Origin: Macrostomum lignano
Lineage: Eukaryota
Assembly (NCBI GenBank): GCA_002269645.1
Contig: NIVC01002007.1
Location: forward strand, 1-64,000
Length of the DNA: 64,000 nucleotides
Direction of reading: 5' to 3'
Numbering within the stretch: the stretch's first letter is position 1; every line of letters begins with the position of its first letter. The notes below the pieces were generated by a model. It searched no databases. It was not told where the DNA came from and saw only the letters and a list, made by a program, of their open reading frames with translations. Below, one piece after another: positions 44,101 to 53,100 of the stretch. The translations under genes and the position numbers were made by a program.

Positions 44101-47100
44101 ACAAAAGAAGCCATGTCGCAAAAAGCAGCAACCTCGGGGCCTCGAAATCTCCAACTTCAATAGCCATGGTTGCAAGTGCATCTCGCGTGCATGTTGTTAA
44201 GACTATATTTATATTATCAGAACTCAAATGTTTCTTTTGCAAGAAGAAATTGTTGCAGACGAACAAAAGACTAAAACCAAGAATAGTTTGGAAGGTTTGC
44301 GCTTAAAATAATAACGGTTATATACCTACCAGGCCCGGCAAGAGAAACCTTTGCTTTCACTGCACCTTCATTTTCTCTCCTTCAGTCGCACATTTGGCTG
44401 AGAGCTTTAAAATGGCCCGCCTGGCTAGGCCGGGCCCAGAGACTGGGAACCTTGCCTTTGCCAGTTTGTTATTTGCCGAGTGTACCTTGGTCTTCCATAT
44501 TTCTGCTCTATACAGTACTGTGTACTCTATAGTGTACACTGTAATGAGTACATGTACATGTGCATAAGCGTAAATGACAAAACTCCAAGCCTAAGGCCAC
44601 TAGAGGGGGTAGCATTGATTCCCAGCAGAGAAGAGATTTCTAGGAGCGATTCTCAGCAGAGAAGAGATTTCTAGGAGCGATCCTCAGCAGAGAAGAGATT
44701 TCTAGGAGCGATCCTCAGCAGAGAAGAGATTTCTAGGAGCGATCCTCAGCAGAGAAGAGATTTCTAGGAGCGATTCTCAGCAGAGAAGAGATTTCTAGGA
44801 GCGATTCTCAGCAGAGAAGAGATTTCTAGGAGCGATCCTCAGCAGAGAAGAGATTTCTAGGAGCGATTCTCAGCAGAGAAGAGATTTCTAGGAGCGATTC
44901 TCAGCAGAGAAGAGATTTCTAGGAGCGATTCTCAGCAGAGAAGAGATTTCTAGGAGCGATTCTCAGCAGAGAAGAGATTTCTAGGAGCGATTCTCTGCAG
45001 AAATTTCGAAATGGAACTCTCAGCAGAGATTCTTAAAGGTGATTTTCAGCAGAGATTCTTAAAGGTGATTTTTCAGCAGAGATTCTTAAAGGTGATTCTC
45101 AGCAGAGATTCTTAAAGGTGATTCTCAGCAGAGATTCTTAAAGGTGATTCTCAGCAGAGATTCTTAAAGGTGATTCTCAGCAGAGATTTTAAGAGACGAT
45201 TCTCTCCCCCGAAGACCACTCACCGAGACAAGCAGCAAACGCGACCTGGACCTGCGCCTGGAGGCCAGGAACTCGGAATCCAGCGAGTACTTGAGCTCCA
45301 GCAACTGAAGCCAGAGCTCGTAAAGGTGCGACTTGAGCTTCTCTGTCCGTATGATATGTCGCTGAACTTGTAGCTCCAAGCTCTCTGTGAGCTGGCAGGG
45401 GTCAGCGAGCTTGTCTAGTAATCGTCTAGCAGATGAGATTGCCGATAAGTGGATGCGAAACTCGCCTTCCTGTTGCTGAAATAGTGTAGAATGAGTTGAA
45501 GTTGTCTGAGTATAGTGGTAGTGAGTTTCATATTAGTCTGTAATCTTAGACAGTTATATACTGCTGCACTGTACTTACTTAGATCGGGAAGGAATTGAGA
45601 ATGCGGAGTTTCCTATACAATCTTTTACAAAAACCCGCGATCTCCTTATAACCCGATCCCCGAGCCAACCCTCAGGAGATCCCACAGTGCCTTTCAACTA
45701 CTAAAATCTTATTCGTACTCTCCGCTCTCTCGCATTGGTCAAAAACAGGACTGTGCAATGCTGTTCCCACACCCCCGGCTCTTGTTGCTTTCCTAACCTC
45801 TTAGCTGAGGATTTTAGGCTGTTAGGTACAGTATAGTCAGTACAAAACTGCTAGTTTCTACGGCAACTATGAGCTATGAATGTAACTGTGCTCAGCTCTG
45901 ATGCAAAGCAAATGGATAGCGCAGAGACAGGGAAGAGACTGATGCCTGACTTTCGTTCAAGAATGCTTCCAAGTCTATGCGGGAAAATGGGACAGAGCCA
46001 GGGATTGGGAAGAACGCGAATAAAAGGGAGAGTACATTATAAGCATTCTAATTGGTCGGTCGCTTCTGATGCAAAAATAGGGATCGGCAACTCGGATTGA
46101 CGGATTGAGGTTGACGGATTGAGGTTGACGGATTTTGTACAGTGTGTAATTAATTATCTTTTCTCCATCCAGGCATGTACTATAAAGAGCTGCAGCTTAA
46201 AATATGAAAATTTGTACACGTACAATCACATTCCAAAGGGTTTCAGGGCTGGCATTGGATGGGTGGGGGGAGGGGAATCTCAGCTGGAGCTGGGGCAAGG
46301 CCGGGCGGTCGTAAACCCCCCTCCCCTGTCCTTAGCAAGCTTGTACACTGGTGGATTATCGATCGGTCAAGCCCAACCCTATCCCCGCGCGGGCCACTCA
46401 ACAACCCCCCCACCCTAACAGTGAGGGTTAGGAATTGCCAGCTAGACTAACTAATGGATCGTCCCGCGCTTGTTTTTTTAAAAAGGAATTCTTGGCTTGC
46501 GTACAATCGGAGGGGTTGGCGTCGGGCGAGAACGTGTTTTTGCCTTATGAGACCCTTTCCGCTCTCTTGTCCACCCCCTCCCCAATACGCTCATTCCCCC
46601 TGTGCTCCTTGCTCCTGCTAAAACTCTGCTTTCAAGCAAAGCTACTATTCTTCTGCAGAGAGAAAATATTTTAGCGTCGAACGCCCCCGCCCAAGAAATT
46701 CGGTGTTCCATTTTCATTCCAAGCTCCAACCCAGTTTTTTCACGCTCAAGCGAACAAGCACAATCATTATAACTGCATTATACTCAACCCTTAGTCTTGC
46801 TAAGAGAGAAAAATCAAGAAACTGCGTCAATAACGAGTTCAGACCGGTCGGTAGCTTAGCAACGTGATCAAAAAATCAATCCCGAGCCGCCGAGGAGTCA
46901 AATTTCTGATTATGCATAAATTGCATATTTGATTCGAAGGAAATACAAAAAAGTTGAATTACAAAACTATTCTCCTATTCAAAACTAACTAAACAATGCC
47001 AGAAGCAATGAAGCAGAGCGGAGTAGCCACACAGGACGATATCATTCGTCAGGCTGAAGCCACCAAGAAGACCCTGGCAACACTGCGCAGCGACCAGGAG

Positions 47101-50100: not shown

Positions 50101-53100
50101 ATTGGCTACCGTTGCAACGTTTGCTATAATGAAAGCCTCAAAACATTTTTTTGTCTTGAATTGGTTGAACAGCTTGTAGTCTTGCCGATGTTCCCTCGGA
50201 AACTTTACTGTTTTAGAGTCGCTTATTAACTGACAAATATCGCGCATCTCAAAAGACAGCTTGAATCCAATTTTTAGTTTAATTCGAAACTTTTTTTCCG
50301 GAACATTCCTTTAGCCAGCTTGAAAATGAACTAGCTTTTTGTTGTGTCATTTCTGCTATCTAGAAATTCTTATTAAAATTATGTTATGCTTAATGGATCT
50401 CGGATTTATTGACCGTAAAGAAAATGATGTTTGGCTGTTTTAGCAAAAGTCATCGCTGTTTTTACCTGGCTGCATTGGTTCAACTGTTTTATTATTTAAG
50501 AATCAATGTCAGCTATGAATTATGAGCCTAATAGGTGTTTTTTTTCTGTTTCACAACTCACAAAATCACCTTTTATAGTCTTCGTCTCATCGCTAGCACT
50601 CAAACAGCTGAATTTAATTTTTTTACTTGCAGCTTGCACGTTTATAAAAGTACACTTCACCTATTTTTTATTCGTACGAATGCACTTCTGTCTTGTGCAA
50701 TCAGTTGATTTTTTGTGTGGACCGGTTTGGCATAATAAAAAAACGATCGGTAACTAACTTGTAGTCGGCCCGCAGTGGGTATTTTGCGGATTTTCCATGG
50801 TTTTCCCTCGGTTTTTTCCCAGTTATCGGTGTATCTGTCTAAATAATAATGCAATATTCTTAATGAAACTCGTCTTCATTCATCATTTTTTTCCATTGGT
50901 GTTTGGAAATTGTGACTGGTTCATAAATTTAATGCACGCTACTTGCTACTCAATCAGACTGTTTGACAGTAGTAGGTATCGAATATATACGTATATGTTT
51001 ATTTTTATGCTTAATAATGCATCGCGCCCGAGCCTGCGTGTTCGACTGACAATCGCGTATTAATTTAATTTATAACCATAATTATCTCGTCTGTTTACTG
51101 CCTAGCTTTATACTGTACAGTATAAGCCTTAAATTGTGTTGTTAAATCAAACTGCTAATGACTGTTCAAGATTCACATTCCAGCTTCTGTCTGTGCTCCA
51201 GCTATGTCCAATTTATGAAAACTCGAAAGCAATTTTGGCTGTTAAAATAACACTGAGACAGTTATTAATTTGTGCACCCAACATGATGCTTACAATTTTT
51301 TTTGAATTGGTTTCAATTTTAATAACTTTTACATTTGTTGCACTGCTTAACTGTGCGTGGTGTTAAACTGTATCTTAGACTGCATACGAGTTATATATAG
51401 AATATTATATATAAATATAAGCATTACGGAATATTAAGTTGTCTCAATGTCCTTATTGCAGCTTACGCCGTCATACTTTACGCCGTAATTTACGCCGTAT
51501 GACTACGCCGTAAAACAAGCAATTGAACTACTCACTTGAAGTAGTATGACGCAGTGAGACCTTTCCGCACCGGTCATGGCTGGAAAATTGATCGACCTTA
51601 TGCTAAACGGTGCAGCCAGGCGATTGCTTGTGTCTGAAAGTTTTTTTACCAGCACAAATTCAAATCTGTCAATCAAAACTGCTGTAAGAATCACAAAGCT
51701 GTTTATTATTATAACGGAAAAGTACACCATGGCACTTACCTGTGATGCTGGCTAACCAGGATTCAACGCGATGCAGGTCCGAGCAAATATCTGATGATGG
51801 CGGGAGATTAATATAATATAGTGTTATAGTCTTCTACAATCATTTGGATTCTAGCGTGAGAGGCACTGTGGTAGCGGGAGAGGAACTGTGGTAGCGTGAG
51901 AGGAACTGTGGTAGCGGGAGAGGAACTGTGGTAGCGTGAGAGGCACTGTGGTAGCGGGAGAGGAACTGTGGTAGCGGGAGAGGCACTGTGGTAGCGTGAG
52001 AGGCACTGTGGTAGCGGGAGAGGCACTGTGGTAGCGGGAGAGGCACTGTGGTAGCGTGAGAGGCACTGTGGTAGCGGGAGAGGCACTGTGGTAGCGTGAG
52101 AGGCACTGTGGTAGCGGGAGAGGCACTGTGGTAGCGTGAGAGGCACTGTGGTAGCGGGATCAAGAGACATTGTAGTAGCGGGAGAGGCACTGTGGTAGCG
52201 AGATCAAGAGACATTGTAGTAGCGGAAGAGGCAGTTGTCTGCCCGTTGTACTTTAATTCCCCATTGTTTCAATCCTCTTAATCTTAATCTTCTTTCAGCT
52301 CAATACTTTCTTGGCCACTCTTTTTCTAGCCGCTTTGCTCGCTAATTGACCTTTTTTTACTCCAAAATTAGAACTATAGGCGAGGCAGCAGAAAGACAAG
52401 AAGGTAAAATGAACTGATTCCTATCCCTGTATTCCCCTATGCCCAGGTGCGCGCAGTTCCTCTCGAACTTGGTCTAAAAGAAGCTGGGAAAGAAAATCCT
52501 TTGCAAGGGGAAGGGTGGCTTAAAAAATAGAAACAAATGCCGCCTACAATCCTCTGCTGTGCTAGGCAGTTCCAAACAGATTTGCTGTCCACTAGGAGCC
52601 TCCAGCTGCTGCCCTTGGAGTGAACTTAACCATGAAGGCAGCGAAGTGCTGGCCCTCACAAAACCAAGCGAAGGAATGAGGTCACCGGAGGAAAATGGCG
52701 TTCGGGATGGATGCTGGGAAACAATTGAGACTATCGGATTCGTAACAGATCAATATAGCTGGGTAGATGGGCGGATAGACAGACAGAAAGACACTAAGAA
52801 ACTAAGATAGGCATACAGGACTCTCATGGGCAGAAACGCAGGCAAGTCAACAGAGAGGCAGGCATAGACAAGCGGACAGGTAACCACAGACAGGTAACCA
52901 CAGACAGTCAGGCAAACAGGCAAGTAAACACAAACAAGCAGACAGGAAGACAGGCGATAGACAAGCAGATACAGACAGACAGACAGACAGACAGACAGAC
53001 AGACAGACAGACAGACAGACAGACAGACAGACAGACAGACAGACAGACAGACAGACAGACAGACAGACAGACAGACAGACAGACAGACAGACAGACAGAC

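Follow-up and report, generated by a model that had tools for sequence, protein, structure and literature searches.

Kinesin light chain gene and the predicted minus-strand exons around it

The window analysed here, a stretch of 64,000 nucleotides, carries a genuine and complete kinesin light chain (KLC) gene, a member of the KLC family, on its plus strand. Predicted exons of a minus-strand gene, called the host below, lie on both sides of it. The KLC gene has just two introns, and its exons are as follows.

46996..47655, plus strand: KLC exon 1, from the ATG through the heptad-repeat coiled coil and linker to ...GRYE; donor GAG/GTGAGG
48248..48488, plus strand: KLC exon 2, start of the TPR domain, ending ...GKRG; acceptor CAG/GTGGCG, donor GAG/GTGCGC
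49185..49738, plus strand: KLC exon 3, remaining TPR domain, C-terminus and stop codon

The three exons have GT/AG borders and join into a complete reading frame of 484 aa, with a TAA in frame two codons 5' of the ATG. In kinesin light chains the N-terminal coiled coil binds kinesin heavy chain and the TPR domain is cargo-binding. Both parts are found in the product. It aligns with human KLC1 (9pmb_C, E=3.9e-169) over residues 13-471, gap-free at both exon junctions, and residues 13-200 pair with the N-terminal heptad-repeat coiled coil of KLC1 in 9pmb_C. Pfam identifies TPR_12 (6e-63) and TPR_10 (3e-57), and the TPR domain matches the KLC1/KLC2 TPR crystal structures with E=1e-111 to 1e-136. 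Exon 1 searched alone also matches KLCs, and the N-terminal 220 aa share only ~45% identity with any sampled KLC. A collection of 15 billion proteins does not contain this exact KLC sequence. The original prediction of a complete three-exon KLC at 46996-49738 on the plus strand, including its TPR domain, is therefore confirmed.

The host gene is predicted from the sequence to have 14-15 exons, to span at least 29 kb and to encode at least 1,350 aa. The encoded protein is modelled as a largely helical, tail-anchored membrane protein without detectable relatives. The chain was rebuilt in phase and contains the following features.

60564..60669, minus strand: most upstream modelled host exon; the open frame runs on to ~61085
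59251..59472, minus strand: host exon, 222 bp
57830..57913, minus strand: optional host exon, 84 bp, phase-neutral; third-position GC 0.61
57224..57488, minus strand: host exon, 265 bp; third-position GC 0.83
51740..51790, minus strand: host exon, 51 bp; CATCAG acceptor, GTAAGT donor; third-position GC 0.62
51536..51633, minus strand: host exon, 98 bp, directly upstream of the KLC-containing intron; strong splice sites, right phase; third-position GC 0.50
45476..51535, minus strand: putative host intron, 6,060 bp; GTGAGT donor below 51536, TTTCAG acceptor above 45475
45224..45475, minus strand: host exon, 252 bp, directly downstream of the KLC-containing intron; no Met
41862..42090, minus strand: host exon, 229 bp; weak donor GTTTGT, needed to keep phase; no Met
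39926..40612, minus strand: host exon, 687 bp
39000..39495, minus strand: host exon, 496 bp; two open frames, phase decided the choice
38544..38749, minus strand: host exon, 206 bp
37646..37980, minus strand: host exon, 335 bp; DVDQLWDYS, a near-miss motif, within an acidic stretch
35001..35455, minus strand: host exon, 455 bp; predicted helical
34317..34482, minus strand: host exon, 166 bp
31625..32104, minus strand: host terminal exon, 159 aa and stop

Fourteen of these exons give a single frame of 1348 aa that stops at 31625, and the 51-bp and 98-bp exons together restore the reading phase. Third-position GC exceeds that of the other codon positions in 12 of the 14, with values of 0.69-0.89 (0.78 in KLC). 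The optional exon 57830..57913 is weakly supported because its third-position GC is 0.61; it is probably the fifteenth exon of the original prediction. Candidate exons antisense to KLC in the automatic chain were rejected as reverse complements of the KLC coding sequence. The single exon 42090-41862 was preferred to a pair of exons, 42090-41912 and 41196-41132.

Predicted membrane helix and C-terminal tail of the host product

On this gene model the host frame ends with a 26-aa hydrophobic segment, followed by 45 aa and the stop.

31763..31840, minus strand: predicted membrane helix, 26 aa, Leu-rich, partly encoded by a CTG-type repeat
31628..31762, minus strand: C-terminal tail, 45 aa, NPAG...DWGC..., with loose KASH resemblance

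The operational definition of a KASH domain asks for a C-terminal tail directly after a membrane helix, 9-40 aa in length and relaxed to 60 aa in animals (PMC4050730). If the gene model is correct, the host tail directly follows its helix and is the true C-terminus, and its 45 aa lie beyond the strict range but within the relaxed one. Its outline, D-W-x-C ... P-x-L-R ... N-G-x-P-F, recalls the KASH peptide. Compared with nesprin KASH peptides in the PDB, DWGC corresponds to DYSC, PALR to PMLR, and NG with a Pro-containing hydrophobic end to NGPPPT, all in the same order. No other ORF end in the window shows such ordered residues after a poly-Leu membrane helix, and a search of the rest of the 64,000 nt for a canonical KASH-encoding exon found none. 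A degenerate KASH tail is thus possible, as judged from these residues.

The details of the tail do not agree with a KASH domain. It ends in GAPF instead of PPPX and fails the animal pattern [PATHQL]PP[QTVFILM]. At positions -7, -9, -11 and -23, where KASH peptides have an aromatic residue, Leu, Pro and Cys, the tail has Thr, Arg, Ala and Gly; its own Leu, Pro and Cys stand out of register at -10, -12 and -26. Pfam KASH (PF10541) gives no match to the host at E<=1 nor to the tail alone at E<=10, whereas the positive control nesprin-2 is recovered at 6e-30. Spectrin and all other Pfam domains are likewise absent from the host at E<=1. Giant nesprin isoforms carry N-terminal calponin-homology (actin-binding) domains; the 5' end of the host may be located outside the window.

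Further searches also failed to place the host. The whole protein has no match among PDB sequences at E<=10, and the tail yields only chance matches there. Among 1.84 billion representative proteins, no true homologue of the last exon and no KASH protein was found; the one match to this exon is a spurious repeat protein. AlphaFold models of two single host exons are low-confidence helices (pLDDT 61 and 56), and Foldseek with an exon model gives no meaningful fold match (best E-value 2.9). The W-acidic motif for KLC binding, with the consensus L/M-D/E-W-D/E, was looked for in the host as [LMIVFT][DE]W[DE] and not found, the nearest candidates being DQLWDY and LSLWEI.

Taken together, the 14 exons and the membrane helix of the original prediction are reproduced as a sequence-based model, with its fifteenth exon optional, while the KASH-like end does not hold up against the Pfam profile and the assignment to KASH/nesprin-type proteins is not supported. 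The host may still be a real KASH protein that sits in the outer nuclear membrane and has diverged strongly, with a tail that binds SUN in the perinuclear space and perhaps with KLC as its motor partner. We regard this as unlikely, though worth serious consideration. A large predicted-helical protein with a single Leu-rich membrane helix and a short C-terminal tail would fit it, and the ordered KASH-like residues at this position mean that reading the nesting as incidental could be too dismissive. Such divergence is conceivable since the lineage evolves fast, as the ~45% identity of the KLC N-terminus suggests. Against it stand the silent profile, the GAPF end, the residues out of register, the length of the tail and the empty homologue search. 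In addition, the poly-Leu stretch is encoded by a CTG-type repeat, and tandem repeats abound in this genome.

Probable nesting of the KLC gene in a host intron

Since the host failed the profile, fold, homology and end-motif tests for a KASH/nesprin protein, the locus is most likely a case of ordinary nesting on opposite strands, to which we assign a probability of roughly 60%; the animal genome is rich in repeats and belongs to a poorly sampled lineage. The nesting would then be incidental, a compact KLC gene sitting in one of the long introns of the host.

Judged by the sequence, a complete KLC gene appears to be enclosed, in antisense orientation, by an intron of a minus-strand gene with many exons. 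All KLC coding sequence, 46996-49738, falls within the gap 45476-51535 on the opposite strand. Exons 51633-51536 and 45475-45224 each have a TTTCAG acceptor and a GTGAGT donor and join in one open frame. The intron of ~6.06 kb that had been proposed between these exons is therefore reproduced, with 6,060 bp, strong splice signals and a continuous frame. We infer that the 51536->45475 splice is in use and that one transcript covers the whole host.

The host model may nevertheless be wrong, in that the exons flanking KLC belong to two genes, or some of them are not exons, and KLC is intergenic. The entire model is a prediction from the sequence, homologue searches backed no part of it, and the argument from phase is partly circular because in-phase exons were selected for. 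Furthermore, the coding signal is weak in both small exons directly above KLC, with third-position GC of just 0.62 (51790-51740) and 0.50 (51633-51536), and exon 42090-41862 has a poor donor. However, the strong donor at 51536 and the strong acceptor at 45475 each need a partner. The two exons directly below KLC are coding-like (third-position GC 0.69 and 0.74) yet contain no Met, and no in-phase ATG with a donor was found between KLC and 45475, so that their upstream coding exons would have to lie beyond KLC. The exons above KLC also weakly resemble the C-terminal region of the host (score 79, shuffled sequences 46+/-8, z=4.1), which would fit a single gene with internal repeats on both sides of KLC. 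We therefore give a split or false host little credence.

The nested pair had also been proposed to act as a nuclear-positioning module, either co-regulated or mutually exclusive, in which the host recruits kinesin-1 via the nested KLC. Recruitment of kinesin-1 is established for KASH proteins, among them nesprin-2 and UNC-83, the TPR domain of KLC is highly conserved, and the near-miss motif DVDQLWDYS lies in an acidic stretch of the host, but the lack of a Pfam KASH domain and of a canonical W-acidic motif, KLC loci free of other overlapping called genes in the three other animals examined, and the weak coupling of nested pairs in Drosophila make this module extremely improbable. The KLC loci examined are those of Ephemera danica, Trichuris suis and Aedes aegypti, where no other called gene overlaps KLC within +/-10 kb; this sample covers distant taxa only (mayfly, whipworm and mosquito) and rests on the quality of each annotation. 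Nested pairs of Drosophila genes are more weakly correlated in expression and function than neighbouring genes without overlap (PMC3814207). That a degenerate, lineage-specific KASH host ending in GAPF binds SUN and recruits kinesin-1 via the KLC encoded in its intron, with antisense nesting coupling their transcription, is highly improbable as well. There is no evidence that the products of the two genes work together.

Should the host prove to be a KASH protein that uses the nested KLC, the locus would be a rare instance of genome architecture linking a motor subunit with its adaptor at the nuclear envelope. A true KASH host would also mean that SUN accepts tails that lack PPPX. As the evidence stands, the locus is a routine antisense nested pair, and its value lies in annotating a repeat-rich animal genome without close sampled relatives, which gains a KLC gene model with good support and an orphan predicted tail-anchored protein.

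Comparison with known systems

A comparison of the nested KLC with KLC1/2 of human and mouse and with Drosophila Klc shows that it is colinear with KLC1 from the coiled coil through all TPRs, and its TPR domain aligns with that of human KLC1 almost identically. KLC1/2 carry an autoinhibitory LFP motif. This motif was not found in the linker of the nested KLC, which differs from KLC1/2 in this respect.

Like nesprin-2, nesprin-4, UNC-83 of C. elegans and Klarsicht of Drosophila, the host has a large cytoplasmic part that is predicted to be helical. It shares with kinesin-1-recruiting KASH proteins a single C-terminal Leu-rich helix, a short terminal tail and scattered, ordered matches to the KASH peptide. 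It differs from them in lacking a Pfam KASH domain, a PPPX end, in-register contacts, detected spectrin repeats and a W-acidic motif. Golgins and SLMAP are generic tail-anchored coiled-coil membrane proteins, and the host resembles this class in its long helical cytoplasmic region and single C-terminal membrane anchor. Classical tail-anchored proteins have a very short tail past the anchor, whereas that of the host is 45 aa long, and the PDB search found no homology of the host to such proteins.

Antisense nesting is common in animals. In D. melanogaster, nested structures hold 9.5% of the genes, and nested genes on the strand of the including gene are significantly fewer (PMC3814207). As in the opposite-strand nested pairs of Drosophila (PMC3814207) and C. 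elegans (PMC12274878), the KLC coding unit lies within one putative intron and without exon overlap. By this analogy the structure of the locus would not be unusual among known opposite-strand nested pairs, and the suggested functional pairing of its two genes would be its sole special point.

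KLC and its predicted placement in the minus-strand gene

The kinesin light chain gene (KLC) of the window is formed by three exons with GT/AG borders:

46996-47655, plus strand, KLC exon 1
48248-48488, plus strand, KLC exon 2
49185-49738, plus strand, KLC exon 3

The spliced exons encode a predicted protein of 484 aa, and an in-frame TAA is found two codons 5' of the ATG. Residues 13-471 align with human kinesin light chain 1 (PDB 9pmb_C) at E=3.9e-169. This alignment takes in the TPR domain as well as the heptad-repeat coiled coil and is gap-free at both exon junctions, and Pfam identifies TPR_12 (6e-63) and TPR_10 (3e-57). 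Judged by its sequence, KLC is a complete, genuine kinesin light chain gene, and the three-exon coordinates of the original prediction are correct. No identical protein is present in a collection of 15 billion proteins. At its N-terminus the protein is at most about 45% identical to sampled KLCs, with matches at this level distributed evenly among vertebrates, nematodes, insects and corals, and longer partial matches reach about 70% at best. Because of this absence and these low identities, the source is presumably an animal lineage that evolves fast or has been poorly sampled. The linker between coiled coil and TPR domain (47440-47580, exon 1) is Gln-rich. The LFP motif, which is autoinhibitory in KLC1/2 and Drosophila Klc, is not found in this linker. 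Repeats of the 'CCCAAATCCCAGTGATCC' type are observed in both introns, at 47760-47950 (intron 1) and 48562-49093 (intron 2), the latter being a 530-bp array of a minisatellite of about 50 bp.

The minus-strand gene model around KLC (the host) was first built as an exon chain by a script that chains splice sites and codon bias, followed by hand curation. The curated chain contains 14 in-phase exons from 60669, in the most upstream modelled exon, to a stop at 31625, and forms a single frame of 1348 aa, a length that covers the modelled exons only. Fifteen in-phase exons had originally been claimed, and the fifteenth is probably the additional phase-neutral exon listed here with the two exons that flank KLC:

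57913-57830, minus strand, extra phase-neutral host exon
51633-51536, minus strand, host exon, TTTCAG acceptor and GTGAGT donor
45475-45224, minus strand, host exon, TTTCAG acceptor and GTGAGT donor

Coding exons in the window are recognisable by their high GC, which is very high at the third codon position. In 12 of the 14 host exons this position is the richest in GC (0.69-0.89), comparable to the 0.78 of KLC. Weak points of the model are the pair of small exons directly above KLC, with third-position GC of 0.62 and 0.50, and exon 42090-41862 with its poor donor GTTTGT.

The two flanking exons join into a single open frame, and the 6,060-bp gap between them (45476-51535) contains the entire KLC coding sequence. 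The donor at 51536 and the acceptor at 45475 are both strong, and each requires a partner. No Met is found in the coding-like exons 45475-45224 and 42090-41862, no ATG-plus-donor of the correct phase is found between KLC and 45475, and start-exon candidates beyond KLC are either low in third-position GC or trivially short. In addition, the segment encoded above KLC is weakly similar to the C-terminal region encoded below it, with a local score of 79 (shuffle control 46±8; 1 of 300 shuffles reached 79). The paired splice sites, the Met-less exons and this similarity favour a single host gene across KLC, and we estimate a probability of roughly 0.85 that KLC is truly intronic in it. The predicted intronic, antisense placement is thus confirmed as far as the sequence allows. 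Tandem repeats make up 13% of the KLC-containing intron, versus 56-92% of most host introns.

Identity of the host protein

The host frame ends with a 26-aa membrane-like segment followed by a 45-aa tail. One repeat artefact aside, no other ORF end in the window pairs a Pro-containing tail with a membrane-like segment. A CTG-type repeat encodes part of the poly-Leu helix. On visual comparison, the tail looks similar to KASH peptides of nesprins in the PDB, with DWGC for DYSC, PALR for PMLR, and NG followed by a Pro-containing hydrophobic end. We consider a degenerate KASH tail rather unlikely; every formal test was negative. Pfam KASH gives no match in the host protein at E<=1, and none for the tail alone at E<=10, whereas a nesprin-2 control in the same run is matched at 6e-30. 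By the published determinants (PMC6527376), a KASH tail ends with PPPX, is aromatic at -7, carries Leu at -9 and Cys at -23, and kinks at Pro -11, whereas the host tail ends with GAPF and has Thr at -7, Arg at -9, Ala at -11 and Cys at -26. Zhou et al. define animal KASH operationally by a tail of 9-40 aa ending with [PATHQL]PP[QTVFILM] (PMC4050730); GAPF does not fit this motif and 45 aa exceeds the strict length.

Pfam shows no domain of any kind in the host, spectrin repeats included, and the PDB yields no sequence relative at E<=10. When the last exon was compared by HMMER with the full set of 1.84 billion representative proteins, one spurious repeat protein was the only return. AlphaFold models of two single host exons are helical with low confidence, and Foldseek finds no match to them below E=2.9. 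The KASH/nesprin label is therefore not upheld, and because all these tests are negative the most fitting description of the host is a tail-anchored orphan protein, predicted to be helical.

Repeats and other genes in the window

The 64-kb window is animal nuclear DNA, of which 25.4 kb (about 40%) consists of tandem mini- and microsatellite arrays. At 11409-16002, an 18-bp minisatellite (GCCAACTGGGACTGGGGC) forms a 4.6-kb array in which several frames stay open on either strand; the ORFs that result, up to 1200 aa long, are spurious. Tetranucleotide repeats, (TCAG)n, (ACAG)n and (TCTG)n, fill host introns as 1-2-kb arrays at 32274-34292, 52971-54442 and 59507-60512. Further ORFs and elements are as follows:

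1295-2950, plus strand, ORF with a long Ala-rich insert
3976-6675, plus strand, Pao/BEL-type LTR retrotransposon fragment, split into several ORFs (Peptidase_A17, 3e-11)
7555-8317, plus strand, ORF with a weak, sub-threshold Srw-type 7TM receptor match (E=0.0017)
17205-17276, minus strand, tRNA-Gln (CTG) gene (Rfam, 64.6 bits)
19185-21482, minus strand, 765-aa ORF with a Pro/Gln/Ala-rich N-terminus

The ORFs at 1295-2950 and 7555-8317 are related and have a common C-terminal segment (...LPGA..V..FRP/HKQL.DW.VPV.DLLVT...). The 765-aa ORF has no Pfam match and crosses a 20-bp minisatellite array of 1.2 kb, in which none of the three frames is closed; this ORF may be an artefact or a real gene whose repeat has expanded.

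Nesting and the proposed functional link

Host and KLC had been proposed to form a motor-plus-adaptor module, which our analysis does not support. The canonical W-acidic KLC-binding motif is not found in the host protein, which comes closest to it with DQLWDY, within an acidic stretch, and with LSLWEI. Host residues ~895-950 (exon 37646-37980, minus strand) comprise a very acidic stretch followed by LSLWEIDQ; the two Trp in acidic context there are each a near-miss of the motif. At the annotated KLC loci of Ephemera danica, Trichuris suis and Aedes aegypti, KLC is overlapped by no further called gene within ±10 kb, and on a compact ENA contig with KLC the neighbours are unrelated. Since these taxa are distant, all that the synteny result speaks against is a deeply conserved nesting.

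On human chromosomes, KLC1, SYNE2 and SYNE3 are located on 14, KLC3 and SYNE4 on 19, and KLC4 and SYNE1 on 6; an ancestral linkage of KLC and KASH genes may be considered. Our literature search found no paper on KLC nested in a KASH gene. The locus adds a new case of gene nesting, which is very common. In D. melanogaster, 9.5% of genes are in nested structures, nested genes that share a strand with the including gene are significantly rarer, and the expression and function of nested pairs are less correlated than those of nearby non-overlapping genes (PMC3814207).
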